Assembly (NCBI RefSeq): GCF_011386835.1
Contig: NC_088795.1
Coordinates: 66,526,001 to 66,590,000, forward strand
Direction of reading: 5' to 3'
Length of the DNA: 64,000 nt
From: Chrysemys picta bellii
Lineage: Eukaryota
Made by a program: the position numbers and the translations under genes. This document shows positions 18,204 through 63,366 of the stretch, piece by piece (within the stretch, counting starts at the first letter, position 1; each line of letters opens with the position of its first letter). Below the pieces are notes generated by a model. The model had not been told where the DNA came from. It ran no database searches and saw nothing but the letters and a program-made list of their open reading frames with translations.

Positions 18204-18659
18204 GTCCAGAGAAGAGCAACAAGAATGATTAAAGGTCTTGAGAACATGACCTATGAAGGAAGGCTGAAAGAATTGGGTTTGTTTAGTTTGAAAAAGAGAA
18301 GACTGAGAGGGGACATGATAGCAGTTTTCAGGTATCTAAAAGGGTGTCATAAGGAGGAGGGAGAAAACTTGTTCACCTTAGCCTCTAAGGATAGAACAAA
18401 AAGCAATGGGTTTAAACTGCAGCAAGGGAGGACTAGGTTGGACATTAGGAAAAAGTTACTAACTGTCAGGGTGGTTAAACACTGGAATAAATTGCCTAGG
18501 GAGGTTGTGGAATCTCCATCTCTGGAGATATTTAAGAGTAGGTTAGATAAATGTCTATCAGGGATGATCTAGACAGTATTTGGTCCTGCCATGCGGGCAG
18601 GGGACTGGACTCGATGACCTCTCGAGGTCCCTTCCAGTCCTAGAATCTATGAATCTATG
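18204..18659 (+). mobile_element. Young 5'-truncated CR1 LINE
   Basis: ORF 18225-18572 is a CR1 ORF2 C-terminus ([22 protein letters not shown]...). The 3' end has the CR1 tail AATCTATGAATCTATG. Confidence 0.95.
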
Positions 18660-24869: not shown

Positions 24870-26384
24870 AGAAAGGTACACAGTATCAGAAGCCTATCAG
24901 ATAGGAAAGATTCATCTTCTCTTATACAAGTCCGATTAATGTTTGTACAGTGCTTTTGCAAATAGAAAGTACTATCTAAGAGCTAAATATTATCATTATT
25001 CCACAGCAAAAGGATGGCTACTGTTAAATTCTTCCATTGTAGAATTTTAAATTTCTAAACTAAACTAGCAGATATGACAGGTGCCAGAAATGTATATAGT
25101 TAAGATTGTCTAACTTTTTCTAAATTTTCTAATATTCTCACCACTATTTTCAGTTGTTTTTAACTCTGCCAAACTTTATTCATTTTCTTTGCAAGATACC
25201 TAACTCAGACTGAATTTCTTTTTTTAAAGTCTCAGGAAAAACAGTTCATCTATTTCAAAGAATGAGAATAGAGGAAATACAACCGATTCATTTAGAAGGT
25301 CTAGTTCCTTCATGGAACATGCTATTGAAATTTGACCAGGGGGTGATATTACTTGTGACACGTTCTGTGACATGTTGTACCTCAAAGTAGCACTCTGTAA
25401 CCCCCGTATTCATCATTCATACATGGTTGGATATTTCATACAAAGCATGCCTGATAAGATATCATATGAAAGGTCATGATTTGCTGAAACCCATTGTTCT
25501 GTCAAAATATGTATGTTGTTAGTGTGCATGAAGTTATGAGATTTTGCTGTATGGGTTGTTACTGAAATATGTTGTGAGTTTGGGCATTACCCAATGCTAG
25601 TTCTCCAGTGACAACAAAGGAGGTGACCAACACCCAGTCATGAACAACCATTAATCAGCAGGGGAGTTGTAAACAAGGGTTTTACAATTCTGTAAGAGAG
25701 TTGCACAAGCATCACTCAATTCTGCAGCTCAGGAAGGCTCACCAGGACGTGTTTGGGCTAGTATTTTCCAGGCACGTAGACTGAGGGTATAAAATAAGGG
25801 ACAGTAGCATCATGCAATTACCTTTCTCCTCTCCCACCTACACTGATGGCAACAAGAACTCTGGGAAGGCAGACTTGAACTAAGGAGAGTGGTCCTGGGC
25901 TTAAAGGGAAAGCCTGTATATTGAAAACTATAACCTACCTGCAAATCCACTGGGGTGAGAAAAACAGCTTGATCCAAATATTGCTTAGGCCTAATCTACA
26001 CTAGGAGGTTATGTTGAATTTAGCAGTGTTAACTCGAATTAACCCTGCACCCGTCCACACAACGAAGCTATTTAGTTCGACATAGAGGTCTCTTTAAATC
26101 GATTTCTGTACTCCTCCCCGACGAGGGGAGTAGCGCTAAATTCGACCTGGCCATGTCGAATTAGGGTAGGTGTGGATGGAATTCAAGGCTAATAGCTCCG
26201 GGAGCTATCCCACAGTGCACCACTCTGTTGACGCTCTGGACAGCAGTCCGAGCTCGGATTCTCTGACCAGCCACCAGCCACACAGGAAAAGCCCCGGGAA
26301 AATTTGAATTCCTTTTCCTGTCTGGACAGTTTGAATCTCATTTCCTGTTTGGATATCGTGGCAAGCTCAGCAGCACTGGCAACG

Positions 26385-28336
26385 ATGCAGAGCTCTCCAG
26401 CAGAGGTGACCATGCAATCGCAGAATAGAAAGAGGGCCCCAGCATGGACTGATCGGGAAGTCTTGGATCTGATCGCTGTGTGGGGCGATGAGTCCATGCT
26501 TTCGGAGCTGCGATTGAAAAAACGGAATACAAAGATCTACGAGAAGATCTCAAAAGCCATGACTGAGAGAGGATACAGCCGGGATGCAGTGCAATGCTGC
26601 GTGAAAATCAAGGAGCTGAGACAAGGGTACCAGAAGACCAAAGCATCAAACAGACGCTCCGGATTCCAGCCCCAGACATGCCGTTTCTATGAGGCACTGC
26701 ATTCCATTCTAGGTGTGGCCGCCACCACTACCCCACCACTGTCCGTGGACTCTGACGGTGGGGTATTGTCGACAGCCGCTTCCTCGGAGATGTTCGCGGA
26801 CGGGGAAGATGAGGAAGGAGATGAGGAGGACGAGGCAGTCGACAGCGCTTTCAACGCTGATTTCCCCGACAGCCAGGATCTCTTCATCACCCTCACGGAG
26901 ATCCCCTACCAACCTTCCCAAGGCGGTAACACAGACTGTGAATCAGGGGAAGGATCAGTAGGTAAGTGTTTTAAACATTTATTTTGAACAGAATAGGAAT
27001 GGTATCTTAACAATGGGTTTTTCATGATTAGTTTGCCCTAGGCGCTTTAGTTTTTAGTCCTTGCCAGTGCAGCTACTGAAAAATTCTGTCAATATGTCCG
27101 GGGATAGAGCAGAAATCCTCCTGGGACATCTCCACGAAGCTCTCCTGAAGGTATTGTGAAAGCCTTTGCATCAGATTCCTGGGGAGAGCGGCCTTATTGC
27201 GTCCTCCATGGTAGGAAACTTTTCCACGCCAGGCTAGCAGCAAGTACTCTGGGATCATTGCCTCGCAAAGCATGGCAGCATACGGCCCTGGTGTTTGCTG
27301 GCATTCATGCAGCATGCGGTCTTTCTCTGTCTCCGAAATCCTCATCAGAGTGATATCACTCATGGTAACCTGCTTTGAATTAGGGGAATGTTAGTATTGG
27401 GACTGATTGCCTGTTCCTTTACAGAACTGTAACCGGCGGTTTACAGCCACGCGGTGGAGGCGGGACAGGGGCAGCATTCCGGGGTCTTTCCCGGGGACAG
27501 CCACGAGGGGGGTGGGACAGGGGCAGAGTTCATGCTGGCCAGATTGCTGGCAGCAGGAACTGGCCAACACTAGGAGCATTGCTTGGAATGCGAAAGGAGG
27601 GCACTGCTATAAATTAAGCTTTAAGCAGCCAAAAGTCTACGTCTTACCATGTCTGCCTGCTTGCCGAATTCCGTTGCCTAGCCCTGCTTGTGTGATCTGT
27701 ACAGCAAGACCCCAGGCACTCAATGGGAAGGCCGAAAATTCGACCTTGTACTGAGTGCCCAGGTGATAGGTACTGTCCATGGTCTTGTTCACAGAGAAAG
27801 ACTATATTCACTGTTCGCAAAACTGTATCTTTGTGAGGAATTCACTCCCTTTTCCCCATCCCACAGCTGCTAGTGTCTCCCGAGCTACCCCGGCATCCCC
27901 TTCCCAGAGGCTGGCGCGGATCAGGCGATGAAAGAGAAGGACACGGGACGAGATGTTCTCAGAACTTATGGGCTGCTCCCGAGCCGAGGCGGCACAGCAG
28001 ACCCAGTGGAGGGAGAACATGTCACAATATCAGCGATCACACAGCGAACGGGAGGACAGGTGGTGGCAAGAAGACCAGCAGGCAACTCAAACACTGCTTG
28101 GACTAATGAGGGAGCAAACGGACACGCTCCGGTGCTTTGTAGATATTCTGCAGGACCGGAAGCAGGAGGACAGAGCCCCGCTGCATTCTCTCTCTAACCG
28201 CCCTCCCCCGCCACAAAGTCCCATCCCCCCCTCACCCAAAGTCCCAAGAAGGAGGGGCAGCAGGGGCCGTGAAAACAGTCACTCCACCCCTGCAGACTGC
28301 TCAAGTAACAGAAGGCTCTCATTCCCAAAGATTTGA
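26385..28336 (+). pseudogene. Harbinger Myb/SANT-like (trihelix) DNA-binding gene, 2 exons (26385-26961, 27867-28336), with premature stop
   Basis: RKRAPAWTDREVLDLIAVWG...YEKISKAMTERGYSRDAVQCCVKIKELRQGY is a Myb/SANT-like domain followed by an acidic tract. Donor AG|GTAAGT at 26961/2 and acceptor CCCATCCCACAG| at 27866/7 join in phase 1. In-frame TGA at 27929-27931; AATAAA at 28413. Confidence 0.9.
27073..27369 (-). CDS. Putative third Harbinger ORF (99 codons from the acceptor), antisense inside the Myb intron; function unknown
   Basis: Uninterrupted non-repetitive ORF ...AMIPEYLLLAWRGKVSYHGGRNKAALPRNLMQRLSQYLQESFVEMSQEDF... preceded by CTAAT...GCAG. An upstream phase-compatible exon candidate (27718-27648) ends ATG|GTAAGA. 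Confidence 0.55.
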   Translation of the reverse strand, partial: VTMSDITLMRISETEKDRMLHECQQTPGPYAAMLCEAMIPEYLLLAWRGKVSYHGGRNKAALPRNLMQRLSQYLQESFVEMSQEDFCSIPGHIDRIFQ

Positions 28337-29093
28337 TAAGTCCTTTCCTTCACTCCAAAAGCACCTCACCCAAGCCCCCATCCCAGTTTCGTCCCCTAAC
28401 TGTGTAGTTGTTAATAAAAAAATATGTTTCTGTTAATTACTGTTTCCGTCATGTTCTTTTAGAGGAGAGTGTGTTTGAAGGGGGGGAAGGGGGTTGGTAA
28501 TTGGAGAGGACAGTCACCTTTACCATGGTACAGACAAGGGGGCAGGTTCAGCAGAAGGTCATACACACATTGCAGTCACTAGGCACCCTGGTCAGTCTGG
28601 GAGGTGGTTTTCATGTTCTGTGTGTGTGGCGGGGGGGCTATGTGAGTTTGTGGCGGGGGAGCGTGGTTACAGATCTTATGCAGCGGTCCTTAGCCTGGCT
28701 GACAGAGCCACGCAATAACCGCCATCCACCGCCACAAAGTCACATAGCCCCCCCACACAGAGTCCTGAAAAGGAGGGGTGGCAGTCTCCGTTGAAACAAC
28801 CAGTCCACCACTGCGGACCGCTCTAGGAGCAGGAGCCTGTCATTCCTCCAGTTTAGAAGCATCCTTTCCATCACTACACCCGCTCCCGACCACAGTCTGC
28901 GTCCCAGTTTCAACACTTTACCATGAAATCCTGAATAAAGAAAACGGTGTTAATGAACAAAGTTTCATTTATTTTATTTTTAAAGGTGTGTTGGAAGGGG
29001 GGGAAAGGGGTTGGTAACTGGAGAGGATAGTCAACATTAACTGGGTAAAGAAACGGGGGGCAGATTCAGTTTCTGTTTAAACAAACTTAATAG

Positions 29094-30358
29094 TCAGAGG
29101 TTACCCTGCTCACTCTGGAACCTAGCTTTCAAAGCTTCCCGGATGCACAGCGCGTCCCGCTGGGCTCTTCTAATCGCCTGACTGTCTGGCTGGGCATAAT
29201 CAGCAGCCAGGCAATTTGCCTCAACCTCCCACCCCGCCATAAACATCTCCCCCTTGCTCTCACAGAGATTGTGGAGCACACAGCAAGCTGCAATAACAAT
29301 GGGGATATTGGTTTCCCTGAGATCAGAGCAAGTCAGTAAGCTTCTCCATCTGCCCTTCAGACATCCAAAAGCACACTCCACCACCATTCTGCACTTGCTC
29401 AGCCGGTAGTTGAAGAGTTCTTTTTCACTGTCCAGGGCGCCTGTATAGGGCTTCATGAGCCAGGGCATTAGCGGGTAAGCTGGGTCCCCGAGGATCACTA
29501 TAGGCATCTCCACATCCCCAACAGTTATTTTGTGGTCCGGGAAGTAAATACCTTCCTGCAGCCGTCTAAACAGACCAGAGTTCCTGAAAATGCGAGCATC
29601 ATGAACCTTGCCCGGCCATCCGACGTTGATGTTGGTAAAACGTCCCCTATGGTCCACCAGTGCTTGCAGCACTATTGAAAAGTAGCCCTTTCAGTTAATG
29701 TACTGGCTGGCCTGGTGGTCCGGTCCCAGGATAGGGATGTGAGTTCCATCTATAGCCCCACCACAGTTTGGGAATCCAAAGCCAGCAAAGCCATCTATGA
29801 TCACCTGCACGTTTCCCAGGGTCACTACCTTTGAGAGCAGTAGCTCAACAATTGTTTTGGCTACTTACATCACAGCAACCCCCACGGCAGATTTGCCCAC
29901 TCCAAAGTGATTCGCAACTGACCGGTAGCTGTCTGGCGTTGCAAGCTTCCAGAGGGCTATGGCCACTTGCTTCTGGACAGTCAGGGCTGCTCGCATCCAG
30001 GTGTCCTTGCGCTTCAGGGCAGGGGACAGCAACTCACAAAGTTCCAGGAAAGTTCCCTTACGCATCCTAAAGTTTCGCAGACACTGTGATTCATCCCAGA
30101 CCTGCAGCACTATGCGGTCCCACCAGTCCATGCTTGTTTCCCGGGCCCAGAATCACCGTTCCACAGCATCAACATGACTCATTGCCACCATGATGTTCAT
30201 GGCACGGGGTCTGTGCCCCTCTCAGACTTAATGTCCTCGCCGCGCTGCCGTAGCCTTCTCACCCGATTTCTCAGCATCTGCCTCTGAAAAAGGTGGATGA
30301 TAAGGTGCGAGGTGTTGACAACGGCCATAACTGCAGCGATGATCGCAGCAGGCTCCAT
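29094..30358 (-). pseudogene. Harbinger DDE transposase (DDE_Tnp_4/HARBI1-like), disrupted
   Basis: Read-through gives MEPAAIIAAVM...WWDRIVLQVWD...NFRMRKGTF...GFPNCGGAIDGTHIPI...KGYFS...GKVHDARIFRNS...GDPAYPL...FNYRLSKCRMVVECAFGCLKGRW...CCVLHNLC. Stops at 30153-30155, 29865-29867 and 29691-29693, plus a frame break near 30200. Confidence 0.95.
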
Positions 30359-31240
30359 GCTCGCAGTGCTGTGGCGTCCGCGCTATCAATCACCAGAAAA
30401 GTGTGCAAACTGATTGCCTGCTGGCGCTTTCACGGGGGGGAGGGGGAGGAGAGCGGGAGTGAGGGTCGAATGACAACAGTTACCCAAAACCACCCTTGAC
30501 ACATTTTTTGCCCCAGCAGGTATTGGGGGCTCGACCCAGAATTCCAATGGGCAGCGGGGACTGCGGGAACTGTGGAATAGCTGCCCACAGTGCACCGCTT
30601 CCAATGTTGATGCTTGCCCTGTTAGTGTGAACTCACAAAGTCAAATTACTGTCCTTAGTGTGGATACACATGTTCGACTTTGTAATATCGGTTCCACAAA
30701 TTCGCTTTAAGTAAAATCGAACTACTCTTGTAGTGTAGACATACCCTAATAAAGTTTAATAAAGTCTAATAAAGTTCAGGATTTAGATTGCATCCTTCTC
30801 TTTTATTTTCTTTGATATCTATCTCTGACTTTTATGCCTACTTACAGTCAGTTAAAATCTATCTTTCTGTAGTTAATAAACTTATTTTATCTTAACCAGT
30901 GAGTTTGTCTGAAGTGTTTGGGAAATCTGTTCAGGTTACAAGTCCAATTTCCTTTGATGAAGTGGTGAATTAGTTAATAAACTTTCACTGCTCAAGAGAA
31001 GGGCAAGACAGTATATTCCTGGGGTGCAAGGCTGGGGGCTTGAGAAGTTCTTTGGTTTCCTGCTGTGTATGGTTCATGAAAGTATTCATGCAATGTAGCT
31101 GGGTGTGCCTCTGCATGCTGGTGGCTGAGTGACAGCTGTGCTTGTAGGGGGGTTGCTGCTCATCACTGGCAAAGCATTGTGAAAGACAGCCCAGGTTGGA
31201 GAGTTACAGTTCCAGGTTGTACCCCGGGGGTCCAGTCACG

Positions 31241-60066: not shown

Positions 60067-60239
60067 NNNNNNNNNNNNNNNNNNNNNNNNNNNNNNNNNN
60101 NNNNNNNNNNNNNNNNNNNNNNNNNNNNNNNNNNNNNNNNNNNNNNNNNNNNNNNNNNNNNNNNNNNNNNNNNNNNNNNNNNNNNNNNNNNNNNNNNNNN
60201 NNNNNNNNNNNNNNNNNNNNNNNNNNNNNNNNNNNNNNN
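60067..60239. other. Assembly gap (173 N)
   Basis: Run of N. Confidence 1.
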
Positions 60240-61720: not shown

Positions 61721-63366
61721 AGATTCATAGATTCTAGGACTGGAAGGGACCTTGAGAGGTCATTGAGTCAAGTCCCCTGCCCGCATGGCAGGACCAAATA
61801 CTGTCTAGACCATCCCTGATAGACATTTATCTAGCCTACTCTTAAATATCTTCAGAGATGGAGATTCCACAACCTCCCTAGGCAATTTATTCCAGTGTTT
61901 AACCATCCTGACAGTTAGGAACTTTTTCCTAATGTCCAACCTAGACCTCCCTTGCTGCAGTTTAAGCCCATTGCTTCTTGTTCTATCCTTCGAGGCTAAG
62001 GTGAACAAGTTTTCTCCCTCCTCCTTATGACACCCTTTTAGATACCTGAAAACTGCTATCATGTCCCCTCTCAGTCTTCTTTTTTCCAAACTAAACAAAC
62101 CCAATTCTGTCAGCCTTCCTTCATAGGTCATGTTCTCAAGACCTTTAATCATTCTTGTTGCTCTTCTCTGGACCCTCTCCAATTTCTCCACATCTTTCTT
62201 GAAATGTGGTGGCCAGAACTGGACACAATACTCCAGCTGAGGCCTAACCAGAGCAGAGTAGAGCGGAAGAATGACTTCTCGTGTCTTACTCACAACACAC
62301 CTGTTAATACATCCCAGAATCATGTTTGCTTTTTTTGCAACAGCATCACACTGTTGACTCATATTTAGTTTGTGGTCCACTATAACCCCTAGATCCCTTT
62401 CTACCGTACTCCTTCCTAGACAGTCTCTTCCCATTCTGTATGTGTGAAACTGATTTTTTCTTCCTAAGTGGAGCACTTTGCATTTGTCTTTGTTAAATTT
62501 CATCCTGTTTAACTCAGACCATTTCTCCAATTTGTCCAGATCATTTTGAATTATGACCCTGTCCTCCAAAGCAGTTGCAATCCCTCCCAGTTTGGTATCA
62601 TCCGCAAACTTAATAAGCGTACTTTCTATGCCAATATCTAAGTCGTTAATGAAGATACTGAACAGAGCCGGTCCCAAAACAGACCCCTGCGGAACCCCAC
62701 TTGTTATGCCTTTCCAGCAGGATTGGGAACCATTAACAACAACTCTCTGAGTACGGTTATCCAGCCAGTTATGCACCCACCTTATAGTAGCCCCATCTAA
62801 ATTGTATTTGCTTGTTATTGTATAAGAATATCATGCGAGACCATATCAAATGCCTTACTAAAGTCTAGGTATACCACATCCACAGCTTCTCCCTTATCCA
62901 CAAGACTCGTTATCCCATCAAAGAAAGCTATCCGATTGGTTTGACACGATTTGTTCTTTACAAACCCATGCTGGCTATTCCCTATCACCTTACCACCTTG
63001 CAAGTGTTTGCAGATGACTTCCTTAATTACTTGCTACATTATCTTCCTTGGCACAGAAGTTAAACTAACTGGTCTGTAGTTTCCTGGGTTGTTTTTATTT
63101 CCCTTTTTATAGATGGGCACTATATTTGCCCTTTTTCAGTCTTCTGGAATCTCTCCCGTCTCCCATGATTTTCCAAAGATAATAGCTAGAGACTCAGATA
63201 CCTCCTCTATTAGCTCCTTGAGTATTCTAGGATGCATTTCATCAGGCCCTGGTGACTTGCAGGCATCTAACTTTTCTAAGTGATTTTTAACTTGTTCTTT
63301 TTTTTATTTTATCTGCTAAACCTACCCCCTTCCCATTAGCATTCACTATGTTAGGCATTCCTTCAG
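61721..63366 (-). mobile_element. Young 5'-truncated CR1 LINE with a long open RT segment
   Basis: The 323-aa ORF 62776-61805 has [11 protein letters not shown] and KFADDTKL RT motifs; upstream ORF 63003-62815 has YLDFSKAFD; tail GAATCTATGAATCT on the minus strand. Confidence 0.97.

Follow-up and report, generated by a model that had tools for sequence, protein, structure and literature searches.

The window analysed here is a 64,000-nucleotide (nt) stretch of the genome of the turtle Chrysemys picta bellii (contig NC_088795.1, positions 66,526,001 to 66,590,000 of the forward strand), and it holds a single decayed copy of a PIF/Harbinger transposon at 25988-30746. Comparison of this copy with its relatives indicates that the turtle Harbinger family probably encodes, in addition to a transposase and a Myb/SANT-like protein, a third, two-exon gene for a BEN-fold protein of about 99 amino acids (aa), nested antisense within the intron of the Myb gene, and that this protein is likely a DNA-binding accessory factor or autoregulator of the element. 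An initial annotation, made from the letters of the window, had proposed that the transposase strand carries a third coding unit with spliced exons, lying antisense within the Myb gene and assembled from three segments named a, b and c. The unit as such is borne out by a conserved splice junction and an open reading frame (ORF) under selection; segment b has a different role from the one proposed, and segment a does not belong to it. Coordinates of all features are collected in Table 1.

Canonical animal PIF/Harbinger transposons (e.g. Harbinger3_DR) have two protein-coding ORFs. The turtle element resembles them in combining a DDE_Tnp_4 transposase with a Myb_DNA-bind_4 gene on the opposite strand, possibly also in its inverted ends and TWA-like flanks, and differs from them in adding a third conserved gene inside the Myb intron. 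Harbinger has been described with two ORFs (PMC9392472), and more are not mentioned in PMC9179366. Full-text searches of the literature for Harbinger together with BEN or a third ORF returned nothing relevant, Repbase entries lying outside that search. In GenBank the peptide is present solely as hypothetical proteins or as the tails of chimeric isoforms.

Predicted exon-intron structure of the third gene

Segment c is fully open over 98 codons, exactly as first described: it follows ...caaagcag/ (slashes mark exon borders) and reads from VTMSDITLMRISE to RIFQ and the stop codon. The start codon is placed at 27650-27648, in the context gcagacATGg, directly on the donor GTAAGA. Left unspliced, the frame opened by this ATG reaches a stop after nine codons; splicing in phase 0 to segment c would give a product of 99 aa in the window. 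With the probable polyadenylation (poly(A)) signal that follows, the 3' end of the messenger RNA would fall at the border between exon 1 and the intron of the Myb gene.

The splice structure was compared in eight copies, namely the window and those labelled L001, L004, L005b, L006, L009, L010 and L002. In all except L002, an ATG/GTRAG donor and a YAG/ acceptor were found in phase 0, separated by 128-445 nt and specifying products of 98-105 aa. The start codon and donor stand in the context gcag(a/c)cATG/GTAAG in the window, L001, L004 and L005b, in ccaaaATG/GTGAGT in L006 and L009, and in agccATG/GTGAGT in L010; L002 has kept the acceptor, and its candidate donor reads ATG/TT. Past the stop codon, AATAAA or ATTAAA is present at 32-90 nt in six of the six copies checked for it (the window, L001, L004, L005b, L006 and L009; L010 was not included), the distance outside the window copy being 32-63 nt. 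Exon 2 does not begin with an ATG in L004, L006, L009, L010 or L002, and a spliced start codon is therefore needed in these copies. A GenBank annotation from Chelonia mydas, EMP39024.1, is exactly this two-exon model, spanning 437 nt and encoding 101 aa, and it adjoins a Myb_DNA-bind_4 gene on the other strand.

Segment b had been taken as coding from 27718 to the donor at 27648/27647. The donor, the acceptor before 27369 and the phase of the junction stood up to comparison across copies. The reading itself, PGVLLYRSHKQG followed by a TAG and ATEFGKQADM, is present and starts at 27716 instead of 27718, frame 1 taken from 27718 yielding a different peptide. As coding sequence, segment b was rejected, given that it contains the TAG and that its conserved parts are the terminal ATG and the donor only. 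With b read as a 5' untranslated region (UTR) plus start codon, its TAG lies in the 5' UTR and is no defect. The expectation that b and c would be open and in phase across copies thus holds for c, which is open, and for the junction, kept in seven of the eight; b is UTR apart from its ATG. Part of the alignability of 27650-27860 among copies is owed to the acceptor of the Myb gene.

Between the two exons, positions 27420-27620 are G-rich and cannot be aligned between copies, and intron lengths range between 131 and 445 nt. The Logan contigs L002, L003 and L010 are colinear with genomic DNA, the intron being retained, and are uninformative on splicing. Decay has gone too far in the Alligator copy for the ATG/GT exon to be recognised.

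Conservation and selection

A phmmer search of 1.84 billion representative proteins returned 58 matches, 27 of them at E<=1e-10. Homologues came from Chrysemys, Malaclemys, Trachemys, Mauremys, Chelonia, Alligator and Gekko, with distant ones in Danio. Wherever the sequence suffices, the ORF of copies L001, L004, L005 (two), L006 and L009 lies on the transposase strand, upstream of the antisense Myb exon 1. L001 and L004 are ordered alike (transposase, antisense Myb exon 2, BEN exon, antisense Myb exon 1), and the order in L005, L006 and L009 is transposase, BEN exon and antisense Myb exon 1, where these parts were detected. The Myb intron of the window, whose proposed length of 905 nt was confirmed with fitting phases here and in L001, encloses, on the opposite strand, both the third gene's coding sequence and its intron; the BEN coding sequence is likewise nested in the Myb intron in L001, L004, L005 and L009.

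Selection was assessed from pairwise ratios of nonsynonymous to synonymous substitution (dN/dS) calculated by the method of Nei and Gojobori (NG86), with bootstrap 95% intervals. Comparison of the window with L001 gave 0.18 (0.08-0.35) for the BEN ORF, and comparisons with L005b and L004 gave 0.20 and 0.31, both with intervals below 1. Deeper pairs of subfamilies fell between 0.19 and 0.39 at dS of up to 2.5. As a positive control, the transposase and Myb sequences of the window and L001 gave 0.19-0.20. Within one subfamily, the pair L006 and L009 gave 0.81 with an interval that includes 1, which, as expected, fits neutral decay after insertion. A dN/dS of about 1 between subfamilies had been named beforehand as the outcome that would speak against a gene; the values obtained, 0.18-0.39, are comparable to those of the transposase and Myb genes.

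The pattern of substitutions agrees with this. The frame of segment c has no stop in four copies, the other five frames having 7-19, and 30 of the 53 differences in the ORF are at third positions. Nucleotide identity is 77-82% in the ORF and 50-60% in the flanks and adjacent intron. The window contains 16 ATG-initiated ORFs of at least 96 aa, and an ORF of 96 aa is not by itself beyond chance; unlike ORF length, the conservation between copies is, by these measures, in excess of it. Judged by these comparisons, segment c is a genuine coding exon, constrained by purifying selection to the same degree as the transposase and Myb genes.

Predicted fold of the encoded protein

An AlphaFold2 model of the window protein, built from a 31-sequence alignment, had a predicted local distance difference test score (pLDDT) of 96.1 and a predicted template modelling score (pTM) of 0.87. 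It consists of five helices and a short hairpin in the order H-H-H-hairpin-H-H. In a Foldseek search of the PDB, the first 12 matches were all BEN domains (BEND3, BANP, NACC1 and BEND6) with template modelling (TM) scores of 0.52-0.68, the best being the BEN4 domain of BEND3 (TM 0.68, probability 1.00). Among the five top matches in BFVD, four were annotated as BEN: a squirrelpox protein, MC036R of molluscum contagiosum and two bracovirus proteins. TM scores over the top 12 in the PDB and the BEN matches in BFVD ranged from 0.52 to 0.72. The structure search suggested for the 98-aa peptide by the initial annotation was therefore productive, BEN domains standing first in both databases.

At the sequence level, the Pfam family BEN (PF10523) was the best sub-threshold match in four of ten distant relatives and was present in a fifth. 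Scores reached 12.6-20.8 bits, short of the 23.2-bit cut-off, and every match covered profile positions of about 20-75. Neither P0049 nor the family alignment, used as queries in word-indexed protein searches, brought up further Pfam-labelled relatives. Because the fold match is strong and the sequence link weak, the third-gene protein is described as a divergent BEN-fold domain below the level of Pfam membership; on the model, the product of about 99 aa is a single bare domain of this fold. BEN-solo factors (Insensitive/Elba of Drosophila, BEND5/6 of vertebrates) and viral BEN proteins share the predicted fold, and the turtle protein differs from them in falling below the Pfam threshold, in being a bare domain of about 99 aa and in being encoded by a DNA transposon.

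Predicted fusions with transposase and host exons

Several predicted proteins join N-terminal sequence of the transposase to the BEN acceptor: P0060/P0009 (Malaclemys LOC128825970), P0007, P0012, P0020 (Chelonia) and P0045 (Alligator). The transposase donors differ from model to model, lying after ..IVLQ, ..DIMV, ..LQKQ or ..DIDE, and are not conserved; their equivalents in the window read CAG/GTCTGG and GTG/GCAATG. Going by these models, a transposase-BEN fusion is possible as a minor product. In L001, the prediction splices the BEN exon, across the whole transposase gene, to an exon lying 1.2 kb beyond the element. LOC128825970 is the NCBI name for the locus of copy L004 (Malaclemys CM051176.1, 7963-10468), with isoforms fusing the transposase N-terminus to BEN. 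This copy is an internal-deletion derivative that has lost the DDE domain and retains the 5' part of the transposase gene, the Myb exons and the BEN exon.

Other predicted isoforms belong to host genes and end in the BEN exon, all of them joined as ..Q/VTM.. in phase 0 at equivalents of the acceptor 27370/27369. They comprise RAB3C X3 and TEDC1 X5 in Chrysemys, CDK6 X2 in Malaclemys, PFKFB4 in two species (Trachemys and Chrysemys) and a GlyT1-like protein in Mauremys. Turtle RefSeq models that end in the transposon exon are P0004, P0005, P0006, P0010 and P0033/P0071. Such gene predictions suggest that the BEN exon, through its strong phase-0 acceptor and its poly(A) signal, behaves as a gene trap, copies in host introns yielding host-BEN fusion isoforms. 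The exon would then resemble exonised or gene-trap transposon exons in that its acceptor joins host exons in phase 0; compared with domesticated fusion genes, the turtle chimeras are predicted isoforms. Being terminal and equipped with these two signals, such an exon would offer a concrete route for adding a domain to host proteins, and would account for the odd predicted turtle isoforms of RAB3C, CDK6, TEDC1 and PFKFB4 as well as for several turtle "hypothetical proteins".

Locus L008 of Gekko kuhli (CM122937.1) contains, at 13568-13855, a BEN-exon homologue that has a good acceptor and adjoins a KDM4B-like gene. No transposase or Myb sequence was found within 7 kb of this homologue, which may have been domesticated or orphaned.

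Proposed function and alternative explanations

In the gene model that we consider probable, exon 1 would be a 5' UTR ending in the start codon, an intron of 131-445 nt would be removed in phase 0, and exon 2 would supply about 98 residues before the poly(A) signal. BEN domains often act in repression and are also usual in chromatin organisation. The domain is a sequence-specific DNA-binding one (PMC11601247, PMC3510454). By analogy with known BEN domains, the protein would most likely bind element DNA or a host site, and could, alongside the Myb-like protein, assist transposition or autoregulate it. The nested antisense position could couple transcription of the third gene to expression of the Myb gene, or interfere with it. 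The motif AATTCGA(C) occurs at 26034, 26139, 26156, 27737 and 30465 of the window, with three occurrences in the left subterminal region and one in the first exon of the third gene; L001 and L004 do not preserve the internal site, and the motif is a weak lead for a site bound by the protein. Accessory or regulatory transposon products include mudrB of MuDR, TnpA of En/Spm and the repressor isoforms of the P element. The turtle protein would be like these in being an extra element-encoded product expected to modulate transposition; the proteins are unrelated, and the turtle one would come from a nested antisense gene, not from splicing of the transposase transcript.

A bolder version holds that Harbinger transposition in reptiles requires this BEN-solo protein as a third component, that the protein binds element DNA sequence-specifically and recruits or restrains the complex of transposase and Myb-like protein, and that its exon, a ready-made phase-0 terminal one, has also grafted BEN domains onto host genes. 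We regard this as speculative and unlikely; were it true, some vertebrate proteins with a C-terminal BEN domain would have a transposon origin.

The initial annotation had left two options for the third product, an independent gene or an alternatively spliced extension of the transposase transcript. The BEN exon does lie on the transposase strand, downstream of the transposase, and the predictions P0060/P0009, P0007, P0012, P0020 and P0045 link the two, all of which favours an exon used mainly as an alternative 3' terminal exon of the transposase transcript, for example to make a truncated regulator. Such use is compatible with a third gene, but as its main role it is unlikely: each fusion is a prediction with a different, non-conserved donor, and the LOC128825970 fusions stem from an internal-deletion copy. 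An independent gene fits better because the ATG/GT exon is conserved in seven of the eight copies whereas the transposase donors vary by model, and the extension is the less supported of the two options. A different account would make the ORF a passenger, a captured fragment of a host BEN-like gene without function for the element. DNA transposons capture host fragments, and distant relatives of the domain are found in host-gene-like proteins (Danio LOC541387 and the Gekko KDM4B-like model). Against this, the purifying selection seen between subfamilies, at dS of 0.6-2.5, matches that on the transposase and Myb genes, and one subfamily after another retains the start codon, both splice sites and the poly(A) signal; mere carriage is accordingly very improbable, and capture may have been the origin of the third gene, as opposed to its neutral carriage. 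As for a chance frame, or conservation arising incidentally from constraint on the Myb intron, long ORFs are indeed numerous in the window and introns can hold conserved splicing elements, but the third-position excess, the single stop-free frame, the 58 database homologues and a confident, recognisable fold leave this account a negligible probability.

Several points weigh against a third gene for a BEN-fold factor. The sample comprises eight copies only. The upstream limit of exon 1 at 27860 is the edge of the alignable block, and the splicing is read from sequence conservation and from gene predictions made by others. A profile search of the peptide, also proposed at the outset, came back empty on both sides: the window protein (96-aa ORF) had no match in Pfam, and the family profile retrieved no BEN chain among PDB sequences, so that BEN membership is argued from the fold and from weak bridging matches. 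The isoelectric point ranges from 5.0 to 9.3 among copies and the net charge is not clearly basic, which does not obviously favour DNA binding, and a search of the element for repeated motifs identified no conserved binding site.

Harbingers are regarded as transposons with two genes, each of which has repeatedly been domesticated (HARBI1, NAIF1 and the MSANTD genes). A conserved third gene in the turtle family would alter the parts list for reconstructing and interpreting reptile Harbingers, and would connect the BEN DNA-binding fold with a cut-and-paste transposon.

Features of the element and of the window

The limits of the copy were set where homology with the Malaclemys copy L001 stops. 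Its inverted ends (25995-26022 and 30712-30739) have TCTACACTA in common and are 71% complementary. It is flanked by TTA (25985-25987) and TAA (30747-30749), which are not identical. No second copy of the element was found within the 64-kb window. By its domain content the element is a PIF/Harbinger: the minus strand at 29097-29672 matched the PIF-type DDE transposase family PF13359 (E=7.7e-29), and the plus strand at 26382-26960 matched the Myb/SANT-like family PF13837 (E=2.2e-21), which identifies the second gene. Frameshifts and stops disrupt the transposase, as does a deletion in its N-terminal acidic region. The third gene in the window keeps its start codon, both splice sites, ORF and poly(A) signal, while the Myb and transposase genes are broken.

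Table 1. Positions of the Harbinger copy and its genes in the window
Feature	Position	Strand	Basis and remarks
PIF/Harbinger copy	25988-30746		Homology limits against L001; inverted ends, 71% complementary
Myb/SANT-like exon 1 (Myb_DNA-bind_4)	26382-26961	plus	PF13837; donor G/GTAAGT, phase 1
Probable poly(A) signal AATAAA	26983-26978	minus	90 nt past third-gene stop
Myb intron, 905 nt	26962-27866	plus	Compatible phases in the window and L001
Third gene exon 2, coding part, phase 0	27369-27073	minus	98 codons and TAG (27075-27073); predicted BEN-fold domain
Third gene intron, 278 nt	27647-27370	minus	GTAAGA...TTCAAAGCAG
Third gene exon 1 (5' UTR and ATG)	27648-27860	minus	Block alignable between copies; conserved donor
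Myb exon 2	27867-28336	plus	Splice phase; in-frame TGA at 27929-27931 in this copy
Diverged tandem duplicate of Myb 3' exon/UTR	28716-29069	plus	71% identity to 28195-28551
Transposase gene remnant, DDE_Tnp_4	30358-29094	minus	Pfam PF13359; comparison with P0007/P0060

The related Malaclemys copy L001 lacks the tandem duplicate of the Myb 3' end, and the duplication is therefore specific to this copy or subfamily. A 39-nt inverted fragment (28631-28669) sits between the original and the duplicate. Segment a (28930-28755, minus strand) had been proposed as a further exon of the third unit. Its reading, FHGKVLKLGRRLW..., does exist in frame 2 from 28928, with a 58-aa ORF at 28916-28740 on the minus strand, but it is the antisense of the Myb 3' duplicate missing from L001. 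It was rejected as an exon because it lies inside this copy-specific duplicate and because its "acceptor", TTTTCTTTATTCAG, is simply the AATAAA region of the duplicated Myb end read as its reverse complement.

Elsewhere in the window there is a run of 173 N at 60067-60239. Three ORFs, at 61805-62776 (minus), 18225-18572 (plus) and 9667-10053 (plus), have one motif in common, and presumably resemble the 3' parts of reverse-transcriptase genes of CR1-type long interspersed nuclear elements.

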